DNA of 64,000 nt from Aplysia californica (Eukaryota), in NCBI RefSeq assembly GCF_000002075.1, contig NW_004797475.1, positions 241,017-305,016 of the forward strand, written 5' to 3'. Below the pieces are notes generated by a model. That model saw nothing but the letters and a program-made list of their open reading frames with translations, was not told the origin of the DNA and made no database searches. Below, piece by piece: positions 14,939 through 60,232 of this stretch. Positions within the stretch are counted from its first letter, which is position 1. Every line of letters starts with the position of its first letter. The position numbers and the translations under genes are program-made.

Positions 14939-17900
14939 TTAGCGATGAATTCCCATCCATATAAGACCAGCACAGCCAATAATCGACCCCGCCTTCCAGT
15001 ACAGATCTCGGGACTGCTTGAACCAATTAGCCACAGCGAATGCTCCACCCCATAACAGGAAGGAGGGAAGAACATACGTCAGAGGTAAAGGCTTTGTTAT
15101 GGCTTCACCGGGAAACTTTGCTTCCTTGTCCGAAGGAGCTGAGTAGAAATAATTCAACAATCTGTGGAAAGAGGAAGACGGGCTTATCAAAATGACAGCA
15201 GAGTAGTCTGTCATAGGTTTGAATTTAACTCTCTCGAGGTAGTCTGTAATATCTAGGAAAGACATAACTTAATTTTTTTTTTTTAAGAGGCTCAATGTCC
15301 AAACCAAGAACTGTACAATTACTCATAAATCCAAATTGTACAAAATATTTTTTTAAATTTATTTTTTATGCAAACAATAATCATTCCCGTGAAAAGGTTC
15401 ACTCACTCCTCCCCATTCTCAACCTCAAACTCAAACATTATGCACCTACCTTTGATTCATTTCTCATCCGCAGAAACAGAACTGCTTATTTTGTTTGAGT
15501 ATGACGCCCGGTTGGCCCAGCTGACTACATTTACATTCTTGAACAGTCTCAATTCAAGAGTCTATGTCTAGTTTTATTATTATATTAAATACAAAATTCC
15601 TCAGATAAAAAGTTTCGTCTAGTAAGGACATCCATATTTCATAATATAATGTTAGCCCACAAAATTTTTAGTGTATTAAACTGTACGCTTTTTTTTTACT
15701 TGCTATATTTGAAGGCTGCTCAGACAACAACTATGACATCAAGTTAGGAGCCCAAAAACATGACAGGAATTTCCAGGTACTACCAAGCAAAGAAAAGAAA
15801 AATGTGTCTCAGGTCTACCACAGTCAAATATTCGAAAAGGATCATATGAATACCCTTTTCAACTCTGTCCATTGCTCATAAACTTGAACTTTGACAAACA
15901 GGGTATAACATTAAAGTTTAGGATGAAAAGGATGAGTAAAAGTTTTTTGTCTGACAGCTCTTCAAACAAAAGAGTTCTCAAAATGAATAATTTACTCTTT
16001 ACAGTAAAAGACATCTTCATTATTTTAACGGAATCATAAAAATATTAAGACACAAAAAGATCTTTCAGTCAAGTGTGAATGAAACATTTCCCCAGCAACA
16101 TTCAAGAGTGACTGACACATTAACAGCATAAGAAACGTAGATTCACTCAAACACGTAGAAGTGACGCACTTTTCCTTTTCTTGAAACCTCTGGTACAGCC
16201 ATGTCTTCAGCTCTTCGGGTTCAGAAGGTACATCAGAGATGGGAATGCGTTGGATGTGGACATGAACACGTTGAGAATGGCCCATGAGGAAGTCTAGGTG
16301 GGGACAAAATTGAAAATTAAATTTTCCTTATGGGAGTAAAGTAAAACAAATTCAACCAATGCTCATAAAGGCCCACAAAGCGAGAGTTTTTTGTTTTGTT
16401 TGTTTTAGTAGAGGTTTTACGGCGCTCGCAACTGCATAAGGTCATATGAGCGCCAACGGGTGGATGTCAACAGAGAAGTCCTTACAGGGAATCAGATTTA
16501 CTCTACTCACCTCTCCAGCTTCAACAGCACATAGTCTGCTTCGACTATCAAGGCACCCCGGAAATAGCAAGTCACAAGACTGTGACAAACAAACAAAAGA
16601 AGAAGAGGAAAAATGACAATAGTAAGGAGTAGGAAAGAAAAAACAGCAGCTCCCTGTTGCAGTTCAGGCACAGTTATAAGTATGACATTGATGAATCAGC
16701 CCATTTACAATTCTACTGTGCATAAGAACATGTTAATGTCTCCCCTTTGGGAATGGCCTAAAGACACTCCAGTCAGTAGCACCGCCCCAGGGGGTTAGCG
16801 AGAGTTTATTCAAGTTGCCCCGAAGACGACGAGAAAAAAGACAAAAACTAGTATCTACGAGGAGAAAATAATAGGTGTGGCATCGAGTTGAGATCAGGTG
16901 CTCGTCAAAATAATGAAACCAAAGATTATATTGGCATTTTTCAGCCAGTTTGTCTCAAATTTTTGTATTTTAGCTCAACATCTTTTATGTTCATTTTAAA
17001 ACACATTTAAGAGAGGATTTTACTGAAAAACATTGATTAAAGGAACAAAAAAAAAGTGAATTATCAGCCCCCCAGTACTCTCAAGCTATGGTAGTCACCA
17101 AACTTTGGCGGCCATTTTCTCGCTAATTTTACAACTGAAACCAGGCAACCCTCACCTCCTTCAATTACAAATATCTTGACTTCTATTTAAGATAATTTAG
17201 AATTTTTTCAACGAAAGCAAGACAAATGAACAAGCTTTAAGACAATACCAATAACTCCAAATGCAAAAAAATTGACGAGGCCTGATTCATGCACTACAGT
17301 TCTCACGGGGCCTGAACTTCTAAATTTATACACGAAAAGGTTGTTATTTCATTTTCAAACTATTTGAAACGCTTTTTACACATTTGTTCTTTTATCTTTT
17401 CTCTGCACCAGAATGTAATTTTGTTTTACTCTTTGTTCTTGCTACTGGATTTTAAGATTGTCTTCTTAACGCAACCTGTGCCTCTTTTTACTTTCATTGG
17501 GTTTTTTTTTATTGATTAAGCAAATTGGTAGATATTTCACACATAAACAAAAACCACATTTCCATGAAGGAAATCTGCAGATGCACAAACTCCAAAAAAA
17601 ACAACAACATAAAAACCGTCATCCTTATTGAATAAGTCTGCACATTAAAAAAAGTAAACAAGGATCATATCCCCCCCTTGACCTTGAAGTAGTTTGTGGA
17701 TACACACACTTCAAACAACCCCCCCCCTCCCCCCCCCCCCCCAATAGAAGCGATCTGCAGATACCTTGCATTGTAGGAGAAGGCCGACGTTGCCCTTTAT
17801 CATAGTCAAATGTGTTGCTGTACGCCAGAGTCACGTCATAGAGCGACTCTACGGAGTTCCTCAGCTGCTCCACACAGACTTGTACGGCTCGTATCCGTGG

Positions 17901-19495
17901 GTAGAGGACAGTATTCAGGGGTTCCAGGCCTGAAAAGCAAAAGACATTGTAATTTTAATAACAATGATAATAATTGCATTTATTTAGCACTTATTTGTGT
18001 TCTACAGCGTGCTCTATGCGCTTTACAGCTTTTATCACCCCAGCAGATCCTAGAATACTCAGAAACATTCTCTGCTTCCCGGGAAGCATACAGTGCAAGC
18101 TGCTGATTTCACGCGCTTTAACACTCACAAACTGACAAGATTTTTCACGGTCTATAGCTGGGTATCCATTTCCACCTGGGTGAATGGGGAAAATCGGTTG
18201 AAAGAGCTTTTCCCAAGGACACAACGACAGGCCCCTGACGGGATTTGAACCCATCACTGTGTGGTTGTGAGTCCAGGAGCCTAACCACTGTGCCATGAGC
18301 GCCATTTTAGTCATGCAATACAATCTGGGCACTTTAGTTAAGGTATGCATCATGTGCATTGACTACATGATCATCTTGTCATGGTGTAGACATATTTCGA
18401 TGGCCTGCCATTACAAATTATTTGTGGCGTTTGTAAGGATGAGAGTGTATGACAGGGTACAGCATCACTGTTCCTTGACTATTTCTTTAGTCATGAATAA
18501 TGAGAGTTTCAAAGATAGTGTTGCAGAGCAACAATATCAATCGAATAGATTGACCTAAATCATCAAGGAATTATGTCTCATTACATTTGCTTTAAAGTAG
18601 TCTGGAATACCTTGAAAAGTTGGTAAAATTTCATTTCAAAAGAAAACATGGCAACTGAAACACACTTTCACAAAAGAACAAAAAATGCAGACGCTGAAAA
18701 ACCCAACAACTTCTTCCAACAAAGGTGAAATATTAATGCAAATTTAAGCATGAAATTTTCATAGGGGCAATATTGTAAAATGTTTTTGATTCTCTAATAT
18801 AGGCAAAAAAAGTTGTTTTTTTTCTCTTAAAATCCCAAAACCAATCTATGATAAAAGAAAACTGGCAGCAGGAAAGACCAAACTTACTTAAGATCTAAAC
18901 CAAAGCCTGGCATTCACTTCTGTTCAAGGAATGTTAAAGAATGTTTTGGAAAGAAAAGTTGTTTCTTTGCCAAGCTGCAGGAAGAAAGAAGTAATTTCAT
19001 TAACTTTAACTTGACCTCACCTTCCTCTTTCTTTATGTTACAATACAATCTTAATTCTTTAAAGCTTTTAAGTCCAAAGAAAACACAATAAAACTTATTC
19101 ATAACAGTTAATTCACTATAGAAAATTGCTTACCCTGACTCTGAGTAAACTGTTTACTCTCCTCAATTACGTTAGGCAATTCCGGATTAAAGCGAGTTCC
19201 CTCTGGAAATATTACCAACCACATCTGTAAGAACAAAACAAGACATTATGATCAGAATGTATGCTCAAGGGGCTCCATTAATGCCTCATTCTAGGAGATA
19301 GAAAGGGGTATGATGGTAAAGAGGTAACAACTATACCCACTAGGAGATGATAACTTAACTGGGTACCAGAATACGACTTTGTATTTGTGAGAGATCAAGG
19401 TATGAGAAAGATTTTTGTTGGCACCAAAACAAACCAACGTCCTGAAAAGAGAAAATAATTCATTGGGGCGGAGGGAGGGAGAGAGAGAGAGAGAG

Positions 19496-31200: not shown

Positions 31201-34200
31201 CCAAATCAATCCGTTAAGGGACACAAAGTCTGCAGATTGAAAACATTATATCAGAATTTACTTTTTGAAAAGAGCTTGAACTTCAAGTGTTGCACTTGAG
31301 CTTTCGAAGATGAAATTCAAACGCACTGGAGACTTCAATGCAAACAGAAACATTAACGGATGCCATTTTAACGGCAAACTTAGAGGAGCTTTTTTTTTTT
31401 ACCTCTTTGTTGAGCCTTAAATAGGGGGAGGAATAATGGTCTCATTTTACAATGACCAAATCTTCTACAGGTTGATTAAAGATGGAAGAATTGTTTTCTT
31501 AAGATTTTCTTAGGGAAGACACTCAAAGTCCTCCCGTTCGTCTTCTTCTGGCAGCATTTCCCAACGTAGTGGACACACTCCCAAATAATCCCAAGTTCGT
31601 CGACACCAAAGTAACGTTCTTCGGGTTCCAAGGGAAGGGCGCCACTTTCGAACCAGAACCCAGAAAGCCAGTCTTTTCGGGTCGCGTATGTTCACAATAT
31701 GCCATGTTTCTGGTTTGATAATATTGTTTGCCGTGGCAAATTATGATATAATGTAATGACAAACGTCGGGTTAGAAGAACGTCCTTGAACTTTTTTATCA
31801 AATACTCCGAGAGTTTTTTCCCCCATAGGATCATTAAGAACTTGTGCAATCGTGAACAATTGTCTCTAATGTCTTCACACCGTTTTAAACAGAATCTTTC
31901 CGAGTAGATTTCCACACATTATACACATAGCTTCAGCAAGACGCAAAGACAATGAGTCATTAATAAATGCATATGTATTGTGAGTTTCATCTTTTTGTGA
32001 ACTAAAAGGTTCTTTTCCCTTTTGGGCTCTATTTTTCCTTGATATGGTTGAGTATGGGAAATACAACAACACATGTATACTTTTTTAAAAATTCAATTTT
32101 CGTAGAAACTCTGATTCCAACTACTCTTGATCTTACCAGAGAGGGTTTACAGTAATAGTAATACTTACATTAGCCGTCGGGAGACTTCGAACGGGGACTG
32201 CCCAATTTGTCACAGGTCCAGTTAGTCACAGGATAAACTAAAGTTTGTCATAGGCCCATTAATTAGTCACAGGCCCAGTATATGAATTTAAAAACGAAAG
32301 AACATTCATTGTTGAAATTTTACAGAGTAATTTGAATTTGCTTTTGATTTGCATACAAAAAGGAAGAAATATTGAACAACACGAACTGAATTGACATTTT
32401 AGAGGGACTTTAGGGCTTATGACTAACTGGGCACCCAAAACTGGGCACCCAAAAGGGTATAAGCGGCGGATAAAAGTATTTTTAAAAAGTAAGACTAACT
32501 GGGCCTGTGATTAACTGGACCTGTGACTAACTGGGCCGGTGACTAACTGGGCATGTGACAAACTGGGCATGTGACAAACTGGGATGCCTCCCTTCGGAGA
32601 GTGTTCGAAGTCACCCCACTGTTCGAAGTCACCCCACCCCCTGTACGAAGTCTCTCTACATGTGGGTAGTGTAGGAAACATGTTTATGAAACAGCCACCA
32701 TGAAAATTTGATGGATATGGCATGAAACAGACACACTGAAGCAGAGATACATAGTTTTGTGAAAGGATTGGTGGACTATTGTGACGTTTAAACCTTACTA
32801 CAAACTGAGGTATGAAAGCTTGATACACCACACCCTTGTCAAAAACACAATTTCGTTCATAGCAAATGCAAGATTTCGCCCAGGGAGGTAACAAAAAACA
32901 CAGCAAGCTAAACCCCAAATGACACACTATGTGATCCAGTGACGAAATGAGGCATCGTAGTGAGACCAGGCGCTCGTCAAAATAATGAAATCCGAGAAAT
33001 CGGCAATTTTCGGTCAGTTTGGAAATATTTTCGAATTTTTGTTTTTTGGCTAAGCACCTTCATTCAAAAACGCTTCTATGTGTGGGTTTTGTGGGAAAAC
33101 GATGATTGAAGACACAAAAATGTCAATTTGCAGTTTCCAGGGACTTTAAAGCTATTGAAATCACCAAACTTTGGTTCCCATTTTTTTACTCCTTAAGATG
33201 CAACTATCTCGACATCTGTTCAATATAAATGGATATTTGTCTTAATCTAAAGCAAGGCAAATGAATAGCCTTTAACATGATACCATAACTCAACATGACC
33301 CAAAACTGACCAGCGCCTGATTCCAGTTTCCACCGCGTCGTAACACAATAACTATCAACAGCTCAGCGAGAATTGACGTGTCCGAAGTCTCCTCGNNNNN
33401 NNNNNNNNNNNNNNNNNNNNNNNNNNNNNNNNNNNNNNNNNNNNNNNNNNNNNNNNNNNNNNNNNNNNNNNNNNNNNNNNNNNNNNNNNNNNNNNCCAAA
33501 TCAATCCGTTAAGAGACACAAAGTCTGCAGATTGAAAACATTAAATCAGAATTTACTTTTTGAAAAGAGCTTGAACTTCAAGTGTTGCACTTGAGCTTTC
33601 GAAGATGAAATTCAAACGCACTGGAGACTTCAATGCAAACAGAAACATTAACGGATGCCATTTTAACGGCAAACTTAGAGGAGCTTTTTTTTTTACCTCT
33701 TTGTTGAGCCTTAAATAGGGGGAGGAATAATGGTCTCATTTTACAATGACCAAATCTTCTACAGGTTGATTAAAGATGGAAGAATTGTTTTCTTAAGATT
33801 TTCTTAGGGAAGACACTCAAAGTCCTCCCGTTCGTCTTCTTCTGGCAGCATTTCCCAACGTAGTGGACACACTCCCAAATAATCCCAAGTTCGTCGACAC
33901 CAAAGTAACGTTCTTCGGGTTCCAAGGGAAGGGCGCCACTTTCGAACCAGAACCCAGAAAGCCAGTCTTTTCGGGTCGCGTATGTTCACAATATGCCATG
34001 TTTCTGGTTTGATAATATTGTTTGCCGTGGCAAATTATGATATAATGTAATGACAAACGTCGGGTTAGAAGAACGTCCTTGAACTTTTTTATCAAATACT
34101 CCGAGAGTTTTTTCCCCCATAGGATCATTAAGAACTTGTGCAATCGTGAACAATTGTCTCTAATGTCTTCACACCGTTTTAAACAGAATCTTTCCGAGTA

Positions 34201-35772
34201 GATTTCCACACATTATACACATAGCTTCAGCAAGACGCAAAGACAATGAGTCATTAACAAATGCATATATATATATATATATGTATTGTGAGTTTCATCT
34301 TTTTGTGAACTAAAAGGTTCTTTTCCCTTTTGGGCTCTATTTTTCCTTGATATGGTTGAGTATGGGAAATACAACAACACATGTATACTTTTTTTTAAAT
34401 TCAATTTTCGTAGAAACTCTGATTCCAACTACTCTTGATCTTACCAGAGAGGGTTTACAGTAATAGTAATACTTACATTAGCCGTCGGGAGACTTCGAAC
34501 GGGGACTGCCCAATTTGTCACAGGTCCAGTTAGTCACAGGATAAACTAAAGTTTGTCATTGGCCCATTAATTAGTCACAGGCCCAGTATATGAATTGAAT
34601 TTTATTTTTCAATTTTTTTAAAAACGAAAGAACATTCATTGTTGAAATTTTACAGAGTAATTTGAATTTGCTTTTGATTTGCATACAAAAAGGAAGAAAT
34701 ATTGAACAACACGAACTGAATTGACATTTTAGAGGGACTTTAGGGCTTATGACTAACTGGGCACCCAAAAGGGTATAAGCGGCGGATAAAAGTATTTTTT
34801 AAAAGTAAGACTAACTGGGCCTGTGATTAACTGGACCTGTGACTAACTGGGCCGGTGACTAACTGGGCATGTGACAAACTGGGCATGTGACAAACTGGGC
34901 ATGTGACAAACTGGGATGCCTCCCTTCGGAGAGTGTTCGAAGTCACCCCACCCCCTGTACGAAGTCTCTCTACATGTGGGTAGTGTAGGAAACATGTTTA
35001 TGAAACAGCCACCATGAAAATGCCTTTGAAAACCAGATTTAATTTGATGGATATGGCATGAAACAGACACACTGAAGCAGAGATACATAGTTTTGTGAAA
35101 GGATTGGTGGACTATTGTGACGTTTAAACCTTACTACAAACTGAGGTATGAAAGCTTGATACACCACACCCTTGTCAAAAACACAATTTCGTTCATAGCA
35201 AATGCAAGATTTCGCCCAGGGAGGTAACAAAAAACACAGCAAGCTAAACCCCAAATGACACACTATGTGATCCAGTGACGAAATGAGGCATCGAGGTGAG
35301 ACCAGGCGCTCGTCAAAATAATGAAATCCGAGAAATCGGTAATTTTCGGTCAGTTTGGAAATTTTTTCGAATTTTTGTTTTTTGGCTAAGCACCTTCATT
35401 CAAAAACACTTCTATGTGTGGGTTTTGTGGGAAAACGATGATTGAAGACACAAAAATGTCAATTTGCAGTTTCCAGGGACTTCAAAGCTATTGAAATCAC
35501 CAAACTTTGGTTCCCATTTTTTTACTCCTTAAGATGCAACTATCTCGACATCTGTTCAATATAAATGGATATTTGTCTTAATCTAAAGCAAGGCAAATGA
35601 ATAGCCTTTAACATGATACCATAACTCAACATGACCCAAAACCACAGAATTCTACACTTAGTGTAGAATTCTGTGCCCAAAACTGACCAGCGCCTGATTC
35701 CAGTTTCCACCGCGTCGTAACACAATAACTATCAACAGCTCAGCGAGAATTGACGTGTCCGAAGTCTCCTCG
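31201..35772. repeat. ~2.2-kb near-identical direct duplication (31201-33395 and 33496-35772) made of decayed transposon pieces
   Basis: The two copies align throughout with few SNPs and small indels, and are separated by an exactly 100-N gap. Confidence 0.95.
35643..35675. mobile_element. 33-bp palindrome with 8-bp TSD; the empty site is at 33299-33306
   Basis: CCCAAAAC-[CACAGAATTCTACAC-TTA-GTGTAGAATTCTGTG]-CCCAAAAC. The other duplicate copy has a single CCCAAAAC. Confidence 0.85.
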
Positions 35773-36241
35773 TGCCAGAGGCCTCCCGCTCTCCCATAGG
35801 TAATTAGACCCCAGCAAATGTTTTGGCCTACTAGTACTAGGTTGAATACGATCTCTTCATATCATTTTGGAAGCCATGCGCAGTGGTGTGGCAGACAACA
35901 CTTTGATTATTGTTTTTCTTATCGCAGGATCTACTTTTATTTTCTTATTATTTTGTACTGTGGGCGTATTCTGTTACTGTTTTTGTTGCTGTTGTTGCTT
36001 TTGCTGCTGTTGTGGATGTCGTTGCTGCAGGCATCCTCAGCTGAGGTAAAGTATATCATTTTAGGTGATTTGTAGGAACATCTCAAGCCACTTTGGCTAA
36101 TTAATTCACTATGATTGTAGATTACTTTTATATTTTATCAGTGACATTTACTTTTATAAGTGTTTTCAAAGGGTTTATCCTGTCTCCCTTGATTTTAACT
36201 AATCATGATCCCAAAGTGTGTGCCCACTCTCTCTCTCTCTC

Positions 36242-36280
<39 letters not shown>

Positions 36281-39200
36281 ATATACACGCGCGTGTGCAC
36301 GCACACACACGCGTTCGCATGCATACAAGCACACATATCACATAGGCTACATAATAATATAAGGATCTGTAAACTAAAAAATCATGAGACTTGATTGTTC
36401 TAGTTCTTGTTAACTTGTTACATATTACTACATTCACGTATATTGTTCTTTTCCACCTGTTTATAGGGAGGACTCAAAAGATTGAACAGCCTAATTGCAG
36501 ATGGTTTCAAACTAATTTCGAGTTGCTTAAGTCTGTACGATAAAAAAGTATAGACTAACTATAATTGGGTAAGTTGAACGTAATAATATTATTATGCGTC
36601 AGCGAGAGAGAGAGAGAGGGGGGGGGGGGGGACGGGAGAAAGAGAGGNNNNNNNNNNNNNNNNNNNNNNNNNNNNNNNNNNNNNNNNNNNNNNNNNNNNN
36701 NNNNNNNNNNNNNNNNNNNNNNNNNNNNNNNNNNNNNNNNNNNNNNNNNNNNNNNNNNNNNNNNNNNNNNNNNNNNNNNNNNNNNNNNNNNNNNNNNNNN
36801 NNNNNNNNNNNNNNNNNNNNNNNNTTTTTGTGTTCTTCTAAAGCTGGTTTTCAACTCCTACAGGTTTACATTATAATAATAATCTTCATCATCAGCATCC
36901 AGTGCCATGGAAAGTTAGAGAAATAAGCCCTGGTACAAAATGTAATTGGATCGCTGACTAACACTAACATTCTTCTGTTAACTGGTCGATTAAAACTATA
37001 CTTTTTTATAGAGTGGTCTAGGGGTAAGATGAAGTCTCAAATTTCACAAAGGACGAGTGGGTCAACAGTTGTTTACTAAAGCAATAAACAGTCTGTCATA
37101 CCCCCACCCCCCAAAAAACAACAACAACAAAAAACAAACCAAAAAACCCACAGCTTTTCCATTCACCACCATCACAGTTTTGTTTAGTTCATATTATAAG
37201 TTTCTTATTGCATGAACATAATAATATGTGTACTATTAGAATTTAATAAGTAAATATCTTTAGAGTACTCACACCAATATACATGATACATTTGATACAT
37301 GTATCTTCCAGATTAAAGGTTGCTTCGGTCACAAGAAAATACTTTAATGAAAAATATAAAATTTTGATTTCGTACGCCATTCTCACTCTCACCCCTCCTT
37401 TCTCTCTCTCTCAGACTTGTCTACGCAACTAACAAGGGGACTGCAGATCTCTTCAGCCCGAAGGCAAAAGTTGAATAAATTATTTTACAACATTTAGATT
37501 TTTAAAATGTAATTGTTTTAAAGTCAGTCATGCCAACATCACAGTCAGGCATCTGCTCATGATCACAATCATAACAATTGAACTTTACGTACATGTATTT
37601 TTACTTGTATTAATTTTCAATTTAAACGGTGAACCAGAAGGCTTGCATTGCAAGTGAAACTGTATTACAAAAATACGTACACGTATGAATAAATGTATTA
37701 AAGAGAAACAGCTGGATCTTCTAAATGTTGCAACAGCTTGTAATTTGTATCTTGTCGACAACGCCACTCAGCAATAAATCATACAAAAAATGTATCTTTC
37801 TGATAGGTCTGAACCTCAGGTTTCTTGGTTCTTTCCTGCTTGGTACAAGGGGAGACCAACGCATCCCGATGGACTTGCTCATAATGCAGTGACGCTGATC
37901 CAAGAATCAAACTTGCTTTGTTTTAAGCACTTCTTAATCATTTTGTCAATAAATCTGTGCTTTATACTTTGTTTCCGCCTGAAGAGTTATCTACTTGGAA
38001 TTTCTCAGAAATTGAACAAAGAAATGCCTTACATGTATAGCAGTATCGGAATCAAACTGCTCTACCATTACTTTTTAACAACAAACATATAACAATTGTC
38101 AGATAATTTGTAAAAAAAAAAGAAAGAAATTGTGCAAGTGTTTTACGATCTCATCAATACGCTTTAGATCACTGAGGAAACAGGCTGCATCTACCCTGCC
38201 TGTCATGGCCTACTATGACCGAGTAAGATAGCAGGATAGAAGCAACTGACTCCTAAGTTTATTTTTAGTAAGCGTTTTATGGCACTTGCAACACATTTTA
38301 AGTTATAAGTGCTGAATATTAGAGGTGTTACAAGAGAGTAACAAACATAAAAAAGGAGGAGAGATAAGGATGAAAAATGTTTGCTTGGAAAGAAGTAGCA
38401 AATCACACCAGAACATCTGCCAACTACCCACTGACTCAGAAGTGATCTAACTTGTGTCATCAATCAGTAAAAAACTTGACTGCAATTTGGAAGATGTGTT
38501 TTCAAATCTCTGCTTGTGAGTATCTAAACAAAGTTATTTGAAGCACTTTGACTTTGACTGAAATGTCCTTGCCTGTTCTGTACACCAGACCTGGTGGGTA
38601 TTGCATGTCAGAACACACATCACATTGATGTTAACTCAAGCAAACAGCAAAATAACTTATACATTGACAGCCGATTTGTTTGAGACGCCTAGGAGTACCA
38701 TTGCACTACATTGTAGGCCTACATGTACTAAGTGAGAGATAAAAAGATTCCAAATTGTAACACGTTAGAGAAAATTAAGTGTGTGCTTGATTCTGAATGT
38801 TAAAAAAAAAGAAAAATGTCAATAAGACACAACAACAACAACAAAACTCTGCACAATAATAAATAAAAGAACACCAATATCAATAATATCATATTTAGAT
38901 ACACTACTTTTATTTATGAAATGAGAAGTTAACAGTATCCATTATCACCTTCAAAACATTCATTTTAACTACTATTCATCAAATAGCCCATGTAAACAAA
39001 CATAAAACAATAAATAAATGGCCATCTATTACAAAGAATGTAACTATCCCCACAACATTCTCACTTAACCACTCAAAAGAGACTAAAATACTGTCAGGAT
39101 AATAGACATATTACATCATTTTTTAAAATTGCCACCATCATTACAACATTCTTTTAAAAAAACACCAAAAAAAAACCTAATCCCCCGTCCCCATATAAAA

Positions 39201-39670: not shown

Positions 39671-40199
39671 GGGGGCTCTCGTGGCCTAGAGGTTAAGGTG
39701 TTTGCCTCTCATTCAAAGGTCCCGGGTTCGAAACCGGGTAGCGACCGAAAATTTTTCTTTTCTAAAATTGTCTCCTTTCACCTCCTTTCCTGCTCTCTAG
39801 CAATGTTCTGTTGTCTGCTTTCATTTCCACTTCCTGCCCCCACCCCTTCACCTCCTTTGCCCCCTCCTCTGGGCTCCTGACTCTTTCTGCAGCCTTTCTA
39901 CTGCTACTCCTTGGCTCCTCCTTACTGCTGTCTTTCTGCCACACCCCTGATCTTCTGGTAGGAAAGATCTACACCTAGCCTTCTCGGACAAGGGCGAAAA
40001 ATCTCGGAGGGCCCGTGTGCAAGTTGCGCACGTTAAAGATCCCTTGGAGGTCTAAAATCGATAAGAGTAGGCTTCGGCCGCCACGCGGGCAAAATTCAAA
40101 ATTTCCTACCAACTGAAAATATTAGGAGTGCCCCGCGCGCTCATATGACCTATGCAGTTGCGAGCGCCGTAAAACACTTTACAAAAACAAACCCCCCCC
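39671..40199 (+). mobile_element. Full-length tRNA-derived Deu/Nin-domain SINE
   Basis: Same family as 28568. A box TGGCCTAGAGG, B box GGTTCGAAACC and 11-bp TSD CACATATATGG. Confidence 0.9.
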
Positions 40200-41652
40200 C
40201 ACATATATGGCATTCAATAATGACAAAAAATTTGGAAGTGGAAAATACACAATGAAAAACATAACGAATCTAACATATATATGGCAAAATTGTCTTAATA
40301 ATGTAAACCTGTAATTCTAATGAGAACTGAAACTATTGCACATGTTTGAGGTCAATATTTTCACCTTCCCCTTTTGACTGGGCGAAGCATTGCAAGTGTT
40401 AATTTTGTTCGTTAGTTTAGATTCTACAAATTAATGCTAACTTTAAAAGCATGCATCAACACACTATCTTCATGGGACTTCATATATAGTCTGTGTTGAA
40501 AAACTCTATGACAGCTAGGCAAACTTTTTTATCACTGCATCATCAGAAAAAAATCACACACTGTGTACCTCAGACTCAGAAAATCTGTTGCCCTAGCTTC
40601 TTCGTAGGTCAATTCACATACTTTCTATTGTACAGTTTGATCTTCTCTACCTATGTCTGATAGAATTATTAAGAAAACAATAAGGCCATAGATGAATCAA
40701 ACAGCACCAAAGCTACCTCATGCAAGGCCTGGATACATAAGGTAAGCACACTTGACAATATTGAATGGGCATGGTAGTTGATGTCAAACTACACATGCAA
40801 ACATTCAGATAACTGTATAGCAAACTGGATTGCACAAGATGATCACTTATATAAATAACCAGGCTAACCCTTTCTCATGATCTATGGTACAGTATGGTAT
40901 AGTACAGAGAAATACATCAACAGGATAATGACCATTTAATGCAAGGGGAAAGCAAGAAAGATGGACAGAGAGAAAAAATGGAAAAGAAAAGGAGGACGTA
41001 CGAGTGACGCCTTCCAACCACCTGCATCCCGCCCGTGATTTACACACCCAAGTCCTAACTCTTCTTAGTATACGGTGCGCCACTCTTTTTTAAAATATTT
41101 TTTTAGTCATAACAAATACAACTCAGCAAATCCATCTTTTCTCAATTGTAGTCTATGATTACTACTTGGATCAAAGCCACACAGAACAGACAAGCCGTGC
41201 CAAGGCACCCCTCTCACATCTAGCGTTGTTGTAGGCTCAAAGCTTGTACACTGTCCACTGTACAGCCCGCCAGCACACAACCTCATTGTTCCACGCTAAG
41301 GGTGAAAGCAGACTACCTGTACAAGCGATATGTGCTGAGAAGCAACACATACCCTCTGCCTCGCAGAGTAATCTTCGCGGGAGTTACCCCATGCTTGCAG
41401 TTAGTAAGGCCTATTGACACAGTCGTCTGTCGTGTGTTGACAAAATCCCATTGTGTTTGTGATCACTGTTTTGATTGCTCTTTTAAACTCTTTATTGTGA
41501 TATTTCAGTGGATACATGTAGATCTATATATGATTGTTTGGAACTGAATCTCAACAACACAGTTGTGGATTTATTTCTCCAAACTCACTTTTACATTGGT
41601 ATTGTGTCTATGTTCATGACAATGGTTGTGATGTAATCTAGAGATCCATATT

Positions 41653-42420
41653 CAGTGGAACTCGGATTCAACGAGATGAGATAAATTCCCCGTTTTCTTC
41701 TTCTTTAAAATCAATAAAAATAACCCGGATTCAACGAGAACTTAAATCAGCGAGCTCGGATTCAACGAGGTCGCTTCCAGGGTGAACAGCCCCCGCAGAC
41801 GTGGCGTCCCTCATATTTCTCCCCAACGAACTCTATCTATTCCCGGAAACCATCCATTGCACCTGCATCGTGAACCATTATTCATTTTGCCAATTGCATG
41901 CGACCAATCAGTGGCCTTTTTTCATACCAACACATGCGTTGCTGGCATGCACACGTGTCTACTCTGGCGTGGGGGTGGGATGGGTGGCGTGCACACCTTT
42001 GACTGTGTGTGCGTGTCGGGGGGGGGGGGGGGGGGGGGGGCACTAGCGGAGCGGGCGTTGAACATTCTTTTTTCTTTATTACACAATGATAAGCTAGTCT
42101 TGACATAGATCAACGAAATGAATTGTGTGCTGGTCTATGAAATCAAAAGTTGCCGTATGCTAGGCTCTACACAGCAACACAACTTTTTGGCGAAGTCGAG
42201 ACGACATCGGCGTGTGCATTTGAACAAATCAGTCTTTTTTTTTTTTTACACTGCTCGTAATATGCAGGCATTTCAGGCACTACTTATGACTTCTCTTTAT
42301 ACTTCACTTGCTCAGTGCCTGCAATTATCTGCACAAAACCTCGTGTTTGCTATAACGAACACTCGGATTCAACGAGATTTTAGGTCAGGCCCGGCGACCT
42401 CGTTGAATCCGAGTTCCACT
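41653..42420. mobile_element. pogo/Tigger-like MITE nested in the P element
   Basis: TIRs (C)AGTGGAACTCGGATTCAACGAG and CTCGTTGAATCCGAGTTCCACT, with internal CGGATTCAACGAG repeats. Confidence 0.85.
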
Positions 42421-43189
42421 ATGTGTCACGATGTGGTGGAATCAGGCGCTCGTCAATTTTTGGGCATGTGGAGTTATTGTTATTATCTTAGAGCTTATTT
42501 ATTTGCCTGTCTTTCGATGAAAACCCCCCCCCTCCCAACTATATTGAATAGAAGTAGATATATTTGCAATTGAAGAAACGGGGGTCGCCTGATTTCAGAG
42601 GTAAAATTCGACAAAAATTGCCAAACCGTTGGAAAAATGCTGATATCTTCGATTTCATTATTTTGATGAGCGCCTGATTTCACCACGAAGCCTCACATAT
42701 TTAGAGCTAGACTACTGCCAGACATTCTATCTTTAGATCTAGACACAATTGGAGTGTTTCTGTGCTTGTTTTGTGTGAATTTGATTTTTCCATTCTGATA
42801 CTGCTGACAACAGCGAATTGCTAGACTCTAGGCTACTCTAGAATAGGCAGAAAACACTGCAAACCTTTTCATCATGGGGAGGAAGTGCTCTGTCTGTAAC
42901 TGTCGGACAGGCTTCTGTAAGAGTAGGAGAAAGCAATACCTTTCTGCTTATCATCGGCCGAGAATTCTAACCGACAAACTCCTAAATTTCCTCGAATTGT
43001 TTTTCTCCAAAAAATAGATCGATACGACGAAGGGCTACGTCCTAATTAAATCCTTATCAATTTTGTTTTATAAAAAAATTCTAATTGTACATTCCGACTG
43101 GTTTCCATGACAGAAGAATTCAAAGCGTCTAATTCATTTAGGTTGCCCGTCATTGTGCATTACGGCGATGCGATCACGCATTGCTCTGA

Positions 43190-44605
43190 AGGAGGTGTTT
43201 GATTATGTTTGGACTTTGTCCAAGCCAGAAAAGGCTGCTTTTGTTTAAGGGTTGATCCACAGTGTTGAGCCTGTGGAGAAAAAGGAGGGAGAAAGCAGAA
43301 GATCAAGGTCCATGAAGTACCATCTGATTCTGCGGGTGAATGGGGCCAGGGTCAAAGTGTGTATGGCTGTCTTTTTCAGTCCTGGACTCTGCAACTGGTG
43401 GGTTCACAATGTTCTCACATGTGGGTTGGGTATAGCAGAGGGTGAGGTTCCAGTTCAGAGAAAAAGGGTAAGGGAGGAGACTACAGAATCAAAGGCACTT
43501 AATCAGTTTCTTCGTGATCTGCCCAAGTTGCCATTTCACTATTGCCGAAGGACTCCAGTAAGTAATACTTGGAACCTGTTTTTCAGAGCTTACAGACAGT
43601 GTACCTAAGCTTGTATTATAAAGATAAGTGTGAGTCTGTGTGTGTGAGTGTGTCAAGGTACTTTCTGTACCTTCATGTTTAAGGAGGAGCTCAATGGTAA
43701 GAACCTGTTATTGTTCCATCCTCGAAAAGAGAAGTGTGACCTTTGTGTGGGCTTTGAGGAGGGAAATTTGGAAAAGGGGGCATACAATCAGCATCGCTTG
43801 AGAGCTAAACGTGCACAGGATGAAAAAACAACAGACAAGGAAAAATGCATGAGCGGCCCCAAAATCAAATGCATCATCATGAACCTGCAATCAGTTCTGC
43901 TATGTCCACGCACTAATGCATTTGCCTTGTACTATAAGACGAAATTGTGTGTACATAATTTCACAGTATGATCTAAAGAGCAAGGACTGTGTATGTTATG
44001 TCTGGAATGAATGCGAGGGTGCTCTGACTGCAAATGAATTTGCTTCTTGTATGGCTGGGGTTTTTTTGGTCATCTGATTAAACTCAAGATGAATATATCA
44101 TATTATTATATTCAGATGGATGTGGTTATCAAAACCGCAATGTCACAATGAGTTCTGCACTGTTACATTTCAGCTCTGTCAATGGTAAGACTGTAACACT
44201 GAAATTCCTAGAGAACGGCCATACACAGATGGAGGTGGACAGTGCTCACAGCACATCTACTGCCCAGCTGATTATGTCAGGCTGATGGAAGAAAGTAGGA
44301 AAGTGAATCCATATGTTGTCAAGTATTCGACTTGTGATTTCTTTTCTGACTTCACCAAAATGATCAACCTGAGTTCAATTAAGAGCACTTCAATATATAC
44401 ATCAGATGGTCAAATCAAATACAAACTGAGATTTGATGATGACTGGTCACATCTGCCATTGAAGCGTGGCAAGTCCACAGACATTCTCCATAAAGGCATG
44501 AAGGAACTGCCTCTGTACCAGGATAGAAGAAAAATGACACAGGCCAAGTTCAAACACATGCAAGAAATGAAGTCTGCGGAGCCATGTGACTACAACAGTT
44601 TCTAG
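43190..44605 (+). pseudogene. Sola-like DDD transposase remnant nested in the P element
   Basis: Frameshifted pieces: CDLC, NLQSVLLCP...YYKTKLCVHNFTV, CYVWNECEG...ANEFASC, SDGCGYQNRN and FLENGHTQMEVDSAHS. The superfamily assignment is from motif recall. Confidence 0.7.
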
Positions 44606-45175
44606 GGTACAGAGGCATCAAGTCTTATCACCTGCAAAGGATTGACGTCAAAATACATCACTCGTTGGAGTCAACTGTTCAAGGTAATTAAATCTAAAGG
44701 CCTACCTATTGTTATGCAATCATGTTCTTGTGCTAACTTTACTTTCATTATGTTTTTTTTAAAAGGAAGAAGAAATATGAAGATAATATCATGCATTGTT
44801 CACCTTTCTGCTTCAGACTTTCTATTTGTGGAAATTTAGCTGTTGCATTTGCTTTCACATTCACTAGTTTCATCTGGAGAAGGGTCTTAAGTCTTTCTTT
44901 TTGTTAACATCTTTGGTTATCGCTTGTTCTCAACAGATTCAGATAGTTTTCTGTTAATTATGCTGGTATTCATTTTAATTATTTTGGAAAAGTAACAGTT
45001 TTAAAATGAACACAAAGACACCATGATTTATTCTAATCTATCACAAGAGAAAATTTTAAAAGCACATTCTACATCAAAGGTGTGTTTAGTTTAGGTTTAG
45101 TAAGAATTTTATGGCACTTGCAACACAAAATAGGTCAGATAAGGGCCAAAGATTAGAGGTATTACTATAGAGTAA

Positions 45176-45439
45176 GGTAAAAAGTTAAGTTGTTCCCGCA
45201 TCCGATCCGGACATTGGGGATTGCCTTGTTAATGAGACAACTTCCTGGGCCTTAGGCATATTGTGGTAGGGTGGCTAGTTCCTTTCCATGCCCCCTTTAC
45301 TTCCCTAACCTGAAGTCAGGTACCCATTTCTGCTGGGTGGGCAGGAGGGGGCGGAAAAAATCAGTGACCGACCCGAGGCTCGAACCCGGACTTTCCGCTT
45401 CGGAGATGAGCGCACTAACCACTCCGTCACCACACCCTC
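45176..45439 (-). mobile_element. tRNA-derived SINE with a Meta-like central domain, nested in a family-B retroposon
   Basis: tRNA head GTGGTGACGGAGTGGTTAG...GGTTCGAGCC, central CCACCCAGCAGAAATGGGTACCTGAC, an ACTTT/ACCTT tail and 13-bp TSD TACTATA(G/A)AGTAA. Confidence 0.85.
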
Positions 45440-45866
45440 TACTATAAAGTAACGTACATAAAAAGAAGTAGGGGAGATAAGGATGACAGACATTTGATAG
45501 GAAAGAATGAGCAAACCACACCAGAGCACCCGCCTACCACTCACTCCAAGGTGTGACACAAGTTTAAAAGTATAATGTTTTCTTTTTCTTTCCAGAGCTT
45601 CTAAAGTTTGTCTCAATTGATGAAAGTAATGACTGCCCTGCTGACAAAAAGCCGCTCTTCTTTGAGTGTCAAATCCAGCTATTGAAAGCGCCAAAGACAC
45701 CTGCAGCCTTCTATGACTTAAACGATTTGTGCAAAGCCTTTCCTTGGTACACAAGATCCAAAGCTCTGTACCTTCAAATGAGATGTCATCTGACCCTACC
45801 ATCATTGACCATACTCAGGAAACTCACTTGTAAGTCAAAAAATCTTTCTGAAACAACACAGTTTAA

Positions 45867-46609
45867 CCCTTTCGCACTTAGCAGGCTTGGCCAGCTGTGG
45901 CCCCCCATCCTTAAGACAAGGGCAACAACTCCACGAAAATTGAAGGGGTACCTTACTAAAAAAATTGTATAAAATCACAAACACAACCAAAAATTATGAA
46001 AATAGTATTTTCTGAAAGGAAAATGAATGAGCTAAATTACTAATACAAAATTATAAGTGGAATAGGAGAGTATGAAATGATATGAGAGGTCTTTCTGAGA
46101 TGCGTGTCTTGGATTCCGAGCCTAGATCTAGATCTAGATTATCTCGTATACATTTCTTCAACTCACGAAGTTTTTGCCACTGACAAAGAGGTAATCCACA
46201 CAAAAGAAATACAACACATTCACAGAGATTGAAGCCTCTGGTGGAAACTTGAAAGCACCTAAAAGACTTTTCTTTGGGTGTTTTTATTTTGTTTTTGCGG
46301 TACTCATATCGGGCGGCTTTGCGCCCATGCATCCTAGAGACATGATGGCGTGTTTACAACTAAAATCTCCTCCGACTTTTGTTCCCGCTCAAAAAGTGAC
46401 TCTTTGTGCTAGCGAAACAAGAAAAACACCACAGTAAACCGGAACTCTTCCTCTATAAAGATAGCTAAGTTAAACTTCTGATGATAGTAAAAGTAGAAGC
46501 CTCCAGCGGCAACGAAACAAACACCCCCGTGGCGGGCGCATTCGGGCGCTATAGGGATGAGCGGCGGTCACCGGCGCGGGCACATACGGGCGCTGTAAGT
46601 GCGAAACGG
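45867..46609. mobile_element. piggyBac-type MITE interrupting the P transposase
   Basis: TTAA on both sides and TIR CC(C/G)TTTCGCACTTA. Confidence 0.88.
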
Positions 46610-48790
46610 TTAAGACATTTTTTGACAGGAAGAATGGAGTAGAGCCTGCCTTGTCATCATTGATGAGGTCTATGTCATGGCACAGATTGTATATTCGAGG
46701 GGAATATTTTTTTGATATGCTGAGGATGTGGAGGGAGAGCAGAGAGCAGCGACTACTTTGCTTGCAATGGTTGTGAAATGCTGTTTTACGTCAAAGAGGT
46801 TCCTGACCAAACCTGTTCCATAAATGCAGATTTCCTGTATTCTGTTGTAGTTGATGTGCTGACAATGCTGGAAGAAAGTGGTGCCAAGGTAATTGCAGTT
46901 ATCAATGACAACAGCGAAGTCAACCAAAACTCCTCAAAGTTCCAGTCATTCGACGGCCCTGACAGACCTTGGATTGTCTAGTCCCAGGCAGATCCACCTG
47001 GACCGATGTTTCTGATGTACGAACCTGTCCACATTATGAAAAACCTAAAAAACAACTGGCAGACAGATTCTACACAACAACTGAAGTTTCCAGTGGAGTG
47101 GGAAGAGAATCAAGAAAGCCTGCATTTATACGTTGTTGCAAAGAGGACGGATCTTTTTTCTTAGAAGCATGAAGATGTCACCCTGTTCAAGTTGTCCAAG
47201 TTGACGCAAGAGACCCTGTCCCCAACCAACATCCAGAAACAGATGGTGAAACTGGCAATCAAAGTCTCCAATTACCAAACGGCAAAGGCCTTGAAGAACA
47301 CCTCAATATCAACCTTCTCTGCACAAGTGTTGGATACAGCAGTTTTCATCGAAGCAGTGGTGCAGTTATGGAAGCTACTGAACAGCAAGTCCCCAAGAGA
47401 GACCATACGTCAGCGCGACAAAGGCCACATAGCTGTTGACTGCTCTCAACAGGGAGATGGAGCACTCCAGCTGCTCCATGATTGGTCAATGACTGCTCAA
47501 GCAATGAAAGCTTCTCTCCCACACAGAGTGAAGAGACTGACCAAGGACACTGCAGATGCCCTGGCTTGGACAAGCAACAGCCTGACTTCTCTGAGCCCAT
47601 ACCTTCTGGAGACTGACCTGCCACACAGACACAACTTTGTTCTCTTGGGATTCTACCAGCAGGATGACCTATAAAACTATTTTGGACACTTCCCATGGCA
47701 GCAGAGAGCAACTACTATGTAACAACTAAGAATGTCTTCAGCACTCATGAATTGGATCGCTCCAAATTTCTTCTGGTAAACAACATGATTGTCGAAGACC
47801 AGAATGACCAGCATGAATGCAGTGACTGTTCCAAAGGCCTCTCAAAAGCTGAAACAAAGTCACTCAACATTTTGCAAGAGACTGGTGCTCTGAAGAATCT
47901 GTCTGGGGGGAATGAAGTCCAAGCAATCTATCATGACGCTGGATGTGTGGCAAGAAAGCACGGAAAGACTGCCCTTGCTGTTCCACCTGGGTTATTTTGA
48001 ATCCCTGAACAGAGGAGGCTTAGTAGGTTTATCTGAAGAGTTTTTTATACTGTATGGCCCTGACTTACAGCTTCGTTAGGAAAACACCGGAGACATACTG
48101 CAGGAATCGTCTAGTGAACATTTTCACTGACTTTGCAGCATTTTCCTGATTGACATCGCAGTCTGCTATCAAATGTATTGTAAATGAAGTGAGTTGAAAT
48201 TACAAAAATATTGATAAAAAGCTAAGACTTGAGAGTAGAGGTCAACTCTTACATGAGTTAAATACTACATATTGAGAGCTAGAACTAGAATTACCGGCTT
48301 CAGACCGACAATCTTAACTTAGACCAATATTTTAGTAGAATATTAATAAATCGAATCGGATGCTAATAATAAAATACATGTAGCTGTACCAGTAGATTTT
48401 TTCATTTAAATTATTGTATGTTTGTTACTGGCAATATTGTCACCCGGGTTCACGGCATGGTTTCCCTACTGTGCCTTACACAAGAACTGATGCGCAGAGC
48501 TTGGCGAGTCAGCGAGCGAAGAGGGCTCAGTGATCCTCTGACGCGAAGCCAGGCTCAGTGATCCTCTGATGCGAAGCCAGGCTTGTCTGTTCTGTGCGGC
48601 TTTGACTTGGATCATTCACTTCAACTTAGTTTAGTGTTATTTTATGCTAATAGGCTAAGTAGTGCCAGAGTTATTACGAATTTTGCGGTGTTGACATCTT
48701 GAATGACAAAATTGGCTGCGTACAAAGGAGGAATAGTCTACCGTGTACTAAGAGCTAAGGGACCCCAAGTTCTAGTTGTCCATCATAATG

Positions 48791-57700: not shown

Positions 57701-60232
57701 GACAGAATATATACGAGGGAAGTCAAAAAATTAAGTACCGTTTAAAAATAATTATAAAATAAATAACTTTCCCAATCAAAACAATTTATTTTTTAATACC
57801 TCATAGATCTATAGGACTACTTCTCCATGTAATCACCAGAACTGTTGAGGCATTTGTTGTAGCGTGGGACGCGCTTCTGAATGCCTGCATCATAGAAAGC
57901 TGCCGCATGCGATTTCAGCCAATGTCCAGTCTCTCCTGTGAGACCAGCGTCTGAGTCAAAGTCCTGCCCAACCAAAAACTTTTTCAAATGCAGGAACAGA
58001 TGAAAGTCACTCGGAGCCAGGTCTGAGCTGTACGATGGGTGCTTCAACTGTTCCCATCCGAAGGAGGCGACCAGGTTTTGAGTCTGTACAGACTTGTGAG
58101 GAGTTGCATTGTTGTGAAGCAGAATAATGCCGTCGCTAAGCATTCCACTTCTTTGGTTTGAATCGCTCTACGCAGGCCGCGTCAGGAAAAAAAAGTCATG
58201 TGTACAGTGTTTTGGGACAGGCAAGGAGTTCTTTTAGTAGAATTTTGGGGAAATGGGATGACAATTAACTCTGATGTGTACTGCAACACGCTTAAAAAAC
58301 TGCGTAGAGCGATTCGAAACAAAAGATGCTGAATGCTTAGCGACGGCGTTGTTCTGCTTCATGACATTGCAACTCCTTACAAGTCTGCACAGACCCAAAA
58401 CATGATCGCCTCCTTCGGATAGGAACAGTTGAAGCACCCATCGTACAGCCCAGACCTGGCTCCGAGTGACTTTCATCTGTTTCTGCATTTGAAAAAGTTA
58501 TTGGCCGGGCAGGACTTCGACTCAGATGCTGATCTCACAGGAGAGATTGGACACTGGCTGAAATCGCAGGCGGCAGCTTTCTATGATGCGGGCATTCAGA
58601 AGCTCGTCCCACGCTACGACAAACGCCTCAACAGTTCTGGTGACTACGTGGATTTTTTTTTTCAGCAAGTGACAGCACAGGACAAATATTGAGCTATTTT
58701 CATGGAAGAGGCTAGCCGTAATGACGGCTAAACTGGCAGTCTAGCCGTACTTATTCTAAATAAGATGGCTAGACTGACCCTTTAAAAAAAAATAGGCCTA
58801 CTGAATTGTAAAAATATAAATTTTTAGTGTGCAGTACCTAAAGTTTGTATTTGAGACGAAACCAGGTGCCTTAATGACAGTGCATGTATTTTAAACCTCC
58901 TGTTTTCTAATGTCTAATGTTAATAGGGCCTAAGATAAATATAGCTAGATTCTTGTCTAGCCGTACTTAAGTACGGGTAGACAGCCAGGCTAGCCGCACT
59001 TTGTCAGGCTAGCCGTACTTGATATTGATGGCTGAATTGTAAATGAAATTTTTAGCTTGCAATGCCTAAAGTATTTTTGTATTTCAGACAAAACCAAAAG
59101 GTGCCTTACTGACTTGCACGTATTTTAACCTGAATAATTACTAGATCTAGATCTAATGAGACCTGTGTACTTAACAGGCATGAGTCGATAGGGCCAAACC
59201 TAGATCTAAGTACGGCTAGACTGGCAGTCTAGCCGTACTTAACTAAACTAAGTACGGCTAGCCACTTCGTATTTTCATTCTGGTTTTACCGTGTACGTAG
59301 ATACTGAGACTAGGTGCCCGGTTACCTTGTACGTAGATACTAGATACTGAGACTAGGTGAGACTAGGTGCCCGATTAGTGTACGTAGATACTGAGAGACT
59401 AGGTGCCCGGTTACCATGTCGGTAGACATTCCGTACTATACAGTCAGTCATTTTTCTTTTCAATGAAAGTGGCTATTCTCACCCGCCCGGAAGTTCTCGC
59501 AAGATCTACTCCTCCCCTCTTCTCTCTCTCTCTCTGTCTCTTTCTGAATACTGTCTATCGGTGTGGACGATCAAATTGACCAAAACAAAGTTAAAACACA
59601 AAAGTAAATTAATTTGGTTGTCTACAAAGATGCTACGGCTATTTAACTTTTCGAATCGAGCCGAACTACGCGGGTCGCCATTTTGTTTTGTTCTCTCTCT
59701 CCTCACTCTCTCTCTCTCCCCTGCCCACAGACAAAATTGTACGCTTTTAGTAGGCTACAAGTACAGTTGTAATGGAACGTTTGTTCACAGCACAGAATTC
59801 TACAATTTTTCTCTTATCACAGTGTAGAATTCTGTGGTTTAGGGTGAACGCAAAATTTGTTGACACGCGCACCGGGTGAGAATAGCCACAAGACCCGCCT
59901 GCACTATTCTCACCCCGGGTGAGAATAGAGGTGGCCCTTTTCAATGGGTACATGTCCTTCAGAATCAAGACACAAAATTGACAATGAAACCAACGAACGC
60001 TGAGCCTCCTGATGAGTGCAGAAGTAACAGTAAATATTTACCCAATTATTCCCCCCAAAAAGGCCAGCTAGACAAAACTACCAACAATATTACTAACCTT
60101 GAGTTGCATTTCTTTGAATTCATCTCTTCCAATTGTCAGCGTAAGGTTTCTGTGTTGCACTTTCCTCACAACATTTCCAGTTGATGAGAGTTCTTCAATG
60201 CAGACAGTGCAACACAAACATGCATTTTCCAT
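48791..60232 (-). CDS. PIF1: ATP-dependent 5'-3' DNA helicase PIF1, complete, 663 aa
   Basis: Twelve coding exons: 60232-60098, 57628-57461, 56412-55926, 55439-55350, 54167-54014, 53242-53128, 52213-52107, 51361-51222, 50976-50870, 50265-50178, 49629-49484, 49045-48791. Total 1992 nt, phases consistent. Contains the N-terminal PINT-like region (CTVCIEELS...LSNCPPDKL), Walker [55 protein letters not shown] and GQAYVALSR. Confidence 0.96.
54945..55268. mobile_element. hAT-like MITE in a PIF1 intron
   Basis: Termini CAGGGTTGCCAG and CTGGCAACCCTA. Only a partial direct repeat (AATATT) flanks it. Confidence 0.55.
56990..57205 (-). mobile_element. Truncated, decayed Deu/Nin SINE
   Basis: Reverse-complement match to the 3' half of the SINE at 39671. 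Confidence 0.75.
57714..58652. mobile_element. Mariner remnant arranged as an inverted duplication of the transposase C-terminus
   Basis: TA followed by a CGAGGGAAGTCAAAAA TIR-like end. A minus copy at 57817-58175 and a plus copy at 58180-58652 both encode HPSYS(P/S)[10 protein letters not shown]...SSGDY. Confidence 0.92.
58704..59269. mobile_element. Mutator-like MITE
   Basis: TIR (G/C)GAAG(A/T)GGCTAGCCGTA and a perfect 9-bp TSD TATTTTCAT (58695-58703 and 59270-59278). Confidence 0.82.
59469..59928. mobile_element. MITE-like element with GTGGCTATTCTCACCCG inverted repeats and a terminal palindrome
   Basis: Perfect 17-bp inverted repeat at 59469-59485 and 59873-59889, plus the palindrome CTATTCTCACCCCGGGTGAGAATAG at 59904-59928. 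Confidence 0.55.

Follow-up and report, generated by a model that had tools for sequence, protein, structure and literature searches.

A palindromic insert between 8-bp repeats

We analyzed a 64,000-nucleotide stretch of the Aplysia californica genome (NCBI RefSeq assembly GCF_000002075.1, contig NW_004797475.1, positions 241,017 to 305,016; hereafter the window), which carries a 33-bp palindrome flanked on both sides by the same 8-bp sequence, CCCAAAAC (Table 1). An initial annotation, made from the letters of the window alone, had pointed out this palindrome together with a nearby single-copy site that lacks it, both of which the sequence confirms, and had proposed that it is a scar left by the excision of a P element. 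The two copies of the 8-bp target-site duplication (TSD) flank inward-facing remnants of both terminal inverted repeats (TIRs) of one transposon family, as in a P excision footprint, and the arms of the palindrome match the terminus of intact elements, CACAGAATTCTACACTTA followed by TAGAA. The insert reads as nt 1-17 of one TIR (35643-35659) joined to nt 16-1 of the other (35660-35675) or, equally well, as 18 + 15 nt with the A at 35660 shared. The annotation had divided it into 16 and 17 nt of two termini; remnants of both ends are indeed present, but the terminus it assumed, ...CACTA, is not that of the family, in which position 17 is T (...ACTTA), so that the scar reads as 17 + 16 or 18 + 15 and not as a terminus ending in ...CTA. 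The window contains 6 copies of the 15-nt arm where 0.23 would be expected, and the 927-Mb genome contains 1934 + 1909, with 0 matches for a reversed control sequence; the arm is not there by chance. We conclude, with a probability of roughly 0.88, that the palindrome is the excision scar of a P-family element.

A site without the insert lies about two kilobases away in the same assembly, in a block that is 99.4% identical to the block with the scar (13 mismatches and 8 indels over 2162 aligned bases; the 41-bp insert is among the indels). The annotation had treated the first block as a duplicate. Two near-identical blocks split by exactly 100 N look like haplotypes rather than a true duplication, and the first is probably the other haplotype of the second, the two alleles having been placed on either side of a scaffold gap. 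To follow the two forms outside the assembly, we compared contigs of four public samples with window positions 34800-36600. Contigs of runs X1 and X9 (samples S1 and S4) carry the form shorter by 41 bp, skipping 35635-35675 (35634 joined to 35676) with the 8 nt fitting either side, and the X1 contig continues without differences to 36212. A contig of run X6 (sample S3) spans the filled right junction, joining 35649-35675 (27 nt of the palindrome) to the right flank up to 36212. Both forms therefore exist, filled and empty contigs share this right flank, and the insert noted in the initial annotation is supported by contigs of public runs.

Table 1. Features of the scar locus, its empty counterpart and other copies of the arm in the window
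Feature	Position	Strand	Description
Left 8-bp TSD	35635..35642	.	CCCAAAAC, matches 35676-35683 and the single copy at 33299-33306
33-bp excision scar (proposed)	35643..35675	.	CACAGAATTCTACACTTAGTGTAGAATTCTGTG, palindrome 16+1+16
Right 8-bp TSD	35676..35683	.	CCCAAAAC
Empty site	33299..33306	.	Single CCCAAAAC in the same context; the 41-bp insert is the sole difference at that place
Block 1 (empty allele)	31201..33395	.	Runs into the 100-N gap 33396-33495
Block 2 (scar allele)	33496..35772	.	Begins directly after the gap
Second, independent scar of the same family	2355..2403	.	GAGGGGGC, 33-bp palindrome with central A, GAGGGGGC
Scar-like hairpin without TSD	59791..59836	.	CACAGAATTCTACAA...18 nt...GTGTAGAATTCTGTG, within a long inverted repeat of another repeated element

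Two segments near the scar, 34861-34921 and 35288-35348, reach word depths of 5,000-19,000 in every DNA run and so belong to very high-copy repeats, and the left flank of the scar (35601-35634) likewise resembles other repeated sequences.

Junction spectrum of the scar family

Scars of this family number ~600 in the genome and are thus more numerous than the elements with exact ends (~180-190). Arms of 15 nt with a spacer of 0-30 nt were found at 473 loci: the exact 33-bp form accounts for 251 of these, spacers of at least 5 nt for 111, and the remainder (about 111 loci) is mostly a 34-bp perfect palindrome. Arms of 10 nt within a total length of 20-32 bp mark 154 loci, a class with a small overlap with that of the 15-nt arms. 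Junction sizes extend from 20 to 57 bp with a peak at 33-34 bp, and these two classes make up well over half of the short junctions; the center of the 33-bp form is T or A nearly evenly (26:24 in the first 50 loci).

The recurrent forms fit the joining of two identical tails, CACAGAATTCTACACTTA. Forms of 34 bp (16+(TA)+16), 28 bp (16+(TA)+10) and 22 bp (10+(TA)+10) are consistent with tail-to-tail microhomology, and the 33-bp form corresponds to a three-base tail overlap with a central T:T mismatch. Longer junctions contain fillers that are often copied from the tails, such as GTGTAC, CTAC and CTGTG, as in ...CACTTAGTGTAC... and ...CACTTCTGTG.... All 20 scars that we sampled for TSDs, of 22, 28, 33, 34 and 36 bp, carry 8-bp duplications, 18 of them perfect and 2 with one mismatch (two of the 20 represent one duplicated locus). 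Arm length is bounded and the junctions are heterogeneous, combining microhomology, blunt joins and templated filler, as the initial annotation had anticipated for repair products in contrast to invariant copies.

The limit on arm length is sharp. Filler-containing junctions provide 222 arms, of which 102 extend to nt 18 but just 10 to nt 19, the latter fewer than base composition would predict. Such a stop at nt 18 is what a fixed cleavage point would produce, and stalled copying does not account for it. The initial annotation had suggested that the 17-nt staggered-cut chemistry of P elements extends to a non-insect member; the scar arms suggest a long stagger, but the retained tails stop at 18 nt and not at 17.

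Scars also occur close together. Examples are a 36-bp scar nested in one of 33 bp, scar pairs with 60-150 bp between them, and a scar at 8 bp from an element terminus of the type designated end B below (G000:C109:1302616-1302672; C58:1290453-1295271; C214:686430-686531; C30:1159560-1159741; C118:594376-595531), and the window itself holds two scars against ~0.04 expected. This apparent clustering suggests local hopping and re-insertion near ends.

Termini and non-coding members of the family

Long elements that end in the scar terminus do exist, as predicted for a scar with a parent. Their TIR is 23 bp long, and intact elements read CACAGAATTCTACACTTATAGAA at both ends (terminus ...ACTTA); inside the TIR the sequence continues as CGGGAAC... 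at end A and as GCGGAAC... at end B, and exact 30-mers of the two ends occur 177 and 192 times genome-wide. We estimate ~180-190 non-coding elements with this TIR, mostly of 2.5-3.5 kb. Those long elements with the 15-mer at both ends that we compared are 1.3-3.4 kb in length and 92-95% alike, and they contain internal 200-bp tandem repeats and no long open reading frame (ORF). Perfect 8-bp TSDs flank six of the seven elements checked (L032-L038). Internally deleted copies of 666 bp, 1,085 bp and 1,290 bp are also present. In the non-coding copies, an ORF runs outward through end A; Pfam gave no match for it.

Three further pairs of end A and end B enclose no P-domain match: G000:C131:1338455-1344773 (6.3 kb), C173:79266-85798 (6.5 kb) and C229:361202-366051 (4.85 kb). 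These may be copies with nested insertions or gaps, or coding copies hidden by runs of N.

A coding parent with a P transposase

The family has a coding member. A search for the P-type RNase H domain gave at least 83 matches in the genome; they belong to several families, most of them without the TIR of the scar family. Neither a long ORF nor a tblastn match to P transposases was found in ten long elements or in the 30 loci of the 15-mer examined first, and twelve loci from a PF12017 search (L041-L052) showed no TIR within their 3.2 kb; these twelve included two copies of the eventual parent family, whose ends lie beyond the 3.2-kb stretch. A listing of exact end-A and end-B 30-mers revealed the parent, with an end B 5 kb from a P-domain match on C124. 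Other P loci were rejected as the parent, those on C820, C334, C167, C1896, C20, C313 and C911 since their longer flanks lack the TIR, and a stretch on C148 that has neither the TIR nor a long open frame. A 34-bp scar 960 bp from the transposase gene on C167 was likewise rejected as an end of that element, as it lies within another small repeat.

The autonomous element lies at G000:C986:103647-108601 on the minus strand and spans 4,955 bp with both 23-bp TIRs. Over the first 70 nt it does not differ from the non-coding copies, and its subterminal DNA is 80% identical to that of the non-coding family over ~300 bp and 88% over ~250 bp. An uninterrupted 855-codon frame (L066:1149-3713:-) encodes five P-transposase domains, THAP (PF05485, 45.5 bits), the Tnp_P_element helix-turn-helix (HTH; PF12017, 74.5 bits), the N-terminal part of the TNP-like RNase H (PF21787, 153.6 bits), the GTP-binding insertion domain (PF21788, 134.8 bits) and the C-terminal part of the RNase H (PF21789, 63.6 bits), all above the curated cut-offs. 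The THAP match covers profile positions 22-87. A candidate upstream exon that would supply the missing THAP start was identified at L066:4729-4800:- (24 codons, starting MVLNCCVFGC, with a GTAAGT donor), and a pyrimidine-rich acceptor precedes the 855-codon frame.

Aligned with the Drosophila P transposase structure 6p5a (E 1e-27), the encoded protein conserves the DDE triad, with D275, D367 and E607 at the positions of D230, D303 and E531 of the Drosophila enzyme; D339/H342 and D444 are likewise conserved (residue roles in the Drosophila enzyme as given in PMC8230255). A second coding copy lies on C124. Its two ends are as in the C986 element, its TSD matches at 7 of 8 positions, and its interior is 92-96% identical to the C986 locus. 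In domain architecture, DDE triad and TIRs with a 7-8-bp TSD, the parent thus belongs to the P superfamily; the element that carries the TIR of the scars encodes a P transposase and not a hAT enzyme, as the initial annotation had proposed.

Both coding copies carry a 22-bp hairpin inside end A (in the L066:4870-4899 region, at element nt ~150-190 of the C986 copy, and at C124:1031317). It reads CACAGAATT(T/C)T(A/T)CAATTCTGTG with GTCACGAG on either side, in a stretch lacking in the non-coding copies, and it resembles an old 10+(TA)+10 scar that the family would have left in its own parent.

Alternative explanations for the palindrome and the empty allele

The palindrome could be a minimal miniature inverted-repeat transposable element (MITE) that moves as a unit, with no long element ever present at the site. 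Recurrence of identical forms (the 33-bp form at 251 loci, and also a 36-bp form that recurs), an 8-bp TSD on every sampled copy and the presence of only filled and empty states at the locus would all agree with this. Sizes of 20-57 bp are harder to accommodate, since the common ones are explained by microhomology of two identical 18-nt tails or by tail-copied filler, and since all five sampled sizes have TSDs, every variant would need to be mobile. Two 18-nt staggered cuts within 33 bp would moreover overlap and leave no duplex transposon, and the 33-bp unit lacks the subterminal motif common to both real ends (TGTGAGGAATTGAA...AACAATGGCG). For comparison, Drosophila P is mobile only with at least 138 bp and 216 bp of its two ends (PMC1562414, citing O'Hare and Rubin). 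We regard a 33-bp mobile unit as highly improbable. We give very little credence, too, to the scar being an extreme internal deletion, in which refilling of the gap from a sister copy stalled within the first nucleotides at both ends and the nascent ends were joined. Aborted copying is the origin of deleted P elements in Drosophila, and the family does include deleted copies of many lengths, but this route predicts a smooth range of arm lengths where we see the abrupt drop between nt 18 and nt 19, and the 33-34-bp classes exceed half of the short junctions by far.

A different question is whether the empty allele is ancestral. A once-fixed old scar may have been lost precisely by replication slippage between the 8-bp repeats, an account that concerns timing only and is compatible with an excision scar; if it were correct, the polymorphism would be silent on recent transposition. 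A palindrome flanked by direct repeats is a classic substrate for slippage, and divergence is 5-8% among the sampled family copies, against only 0.6% between the two blocks. Against this stand the shortness of a 33-bp palindrome with a central mismatch, which is not expected to be strongly unstable, and the persistence of an intact transposase frame; we consider secondary loss unlikely, though worth keeping in view.

Several observations weigh against the proposed excision of a P element at this site. Only scar-filled and empty forms were found in the assembly and the contigs of four samples, with no full element among them, and insertion followed by excision at the locus is accordingly read from the family and not from an allele seen there. 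The public runs are contigs and not raw reads, and they show the presence of the two forms rather than allele frequency or zygosity, as the contigs break at a palindrome whose 31-mers are common to hundreds of loci. The C986 element lacks a TSD (flanks GGAAAGAC versus GGTTCGCC). Divergence is 5-8% among sampled non-coding copies and 4-8% between the two coding copies, which suggests an old family, in which case a polymorphic scar needs either late activity or secondary, precise loss of the palindrome; the view of the initial annotation that insertion and excision were recent gains only indirect support, from the polymorphism. Finally, the scars alone do not strictly separate an 18-nt stagger from a 17-nt stagger with one added A. 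On this last point, Drosophila junction tables show the first inserted base after a full tail to be mostly T and not A (PMC2895639), which does not support a general habit of adding A, and a true 18-nt stagger is the more probable of the two, with good though incomplete confidence.

Proposed course of events

We infer the order of events at the locus, the cleavage chemistry and the repair pathway from the features described above. A P element, most likely a ~2.7-kb non-coding derivative, would have inserted at CCCAAAAC and duplicated those 8 bp. The P transposase of the family would later have excised it, cutting each 3' end at the element boundary and the opposite strand ~18 nt inside, and so leaving each flank with the 3' single-stranded tail CACAGAATTCTACACTTA. 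The two tails would have had the same sequence and would not have been complementary; end joining could have aligned the three terminal bases of each, with T16:A18 and A18:T16 pairs on either side of a T:T mismatch, and gap filling and nick sealing would then yield the TSD, the 33-bp palindrome and the second TSD. Pairing of the terminal TA alone would give the 34-bp form, and other microhomologies or templated synthesis the remaining forms. On a wider reading, the family would be active in Aplysia, the C986 element would encode a working P transposase with an 18-nt stagger, and the ~600 scars would be a germline record of the joining of 18-nt non-complementary 3' tails; we put this forward tentatively, as a possibility that is at present rather doubtful.

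Other copies of the arm and other P families

Two further copies of the arm structure in the window are listed in Table 1. The hairpin at 59791-59836 sits in the long inverted repeat of another element and was hence copied along with that element and not made there; L039 and L040 carry it at either end, with the same flanks, and it makes up 10 of the 23 contexts of the 15-mer that we sampled. The host repeat (L039:201-1116, ~0.9 kb; L040; L031) carries 15 nt + 18 nt of filler + 13 nt in each of its long inverted repeats, with constant flanks, ACCCTAAAC ... CCGTGAACAAACG. This hairpin is apparently a fossil scar amplified inside another transposon. No P-transposase homology was detected anywhere in the 64-kb window, and a brief look at the CAAAGCC sequence at 41172, which the initial annotation had assigned to a different P family, gave no clear inverted partner within 40000-48000.

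Elsewhere in the genome, a P family with other ends is represented by a 6,355-bp element at G000:C820:93603-99965 (L053+L045+L054), which has an open 892-codon frame and the ends AGACCTGCATGT and is flanked on both sides by the 8-bp repeat ATTTTGGT. At least five further P loci have open frames of 700-850 codons. Dense short palindromes of the TAGATC/CTAGAT type occur downstream of the P transposase gene on C167 (L056:540-1070) and at many other loci.

Comparison with known transposition systems

The genome of an animal distant from the fly thus holds hundreds of independent scars together with an intact coding copy of the same P family, and to this the locus studied here contributes a probably allelic empty site and a connection between scar and coding element. 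It becomes testable whether a long stagger is ancestral to the P/THAP9 superfamily and how germline end joining handles long non-complementary tails in an animal without genetics. For annotation, short TIR-only palindromes with TSDs in the Aplysia genome are to be classed as scars and not as MITEs. Should the family prove active, it would reveal for the first time how a P transposase from outside flies cuts, and it would be a candidate tool for transgenesis in an animal group that has none. A limited literature search returned no report of genomic P scars outside flies, and in the literature searched the 17-nt staggered cut, the most unusual trait of the fly P transposase, is documented only for the fly enzyme.

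With hAT elements, the Aplysia family shares the 8-bp TSD, but its parent encodes a P transposase. When hAT elements excise, hairpins form on the flanking DNA and no remnants of the TIRs stay behind. Zebrafish Pdre2/THAP9 and human THAP9 are, like the Aplysia enzyme, P-superfamily transposases of non-insect animals, and excerpts of PMC10983969 describe experimental P-type end excision for non-insect members. For zebrafish THAP9 these excerpts report larger flanking deletions on excision and mention no stagger, whereas in Aplysia the stagger can be read from natural scars.

The closest parallel is the Drosophila P element. Excision in the fly leaves the TSD and up to 17 nt of each TIR, with products that include blunt joins, templated insertions and junctions at short microhomologies where the tails end (PMC2895639, Table 1), and fly junctions form at (AT) or (TA) near the tail ends and at longer microhomologies (Chan, Yu and McVey 2010, PMC2895639). 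The 17-nt stagger is described as a distinguishing feature of P transposase (PMC7776569), and end joining at the Drosophila donor site after P cleavage was described by Beall and Rio (1997), as cited in PMC7776569. The Aplysia scars are alike in having the 8-bp TSD on both sides, in keeping most of a long 3' tail, and in being joined at microhomologies of 1-3 nt close to the ends of the tails, alongside blunt joins, templated insertions and microhomologies that are longer and internal; the transposases share THAP, HTH, a split RNase H with a GTP-binding insertion domain and the DDE triad. They differ in that the Aplysia tails are apparently 18 nt where those of the fly are 17, in that the 23-bp Aplysia TIR is unrelated in sequence to the 31-bp TIR of the fly, and in that the ~600 Aplysia scars are natural, germline-inherited and from a non-insect host, whereas the fly scars were recovered from crosses. 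Together, these comparisons suggest that the long stagger of P transposases is conserved in Aplysia with a shift of one base, and that donor breaks in Aplysia are repaired much as they are in flies.
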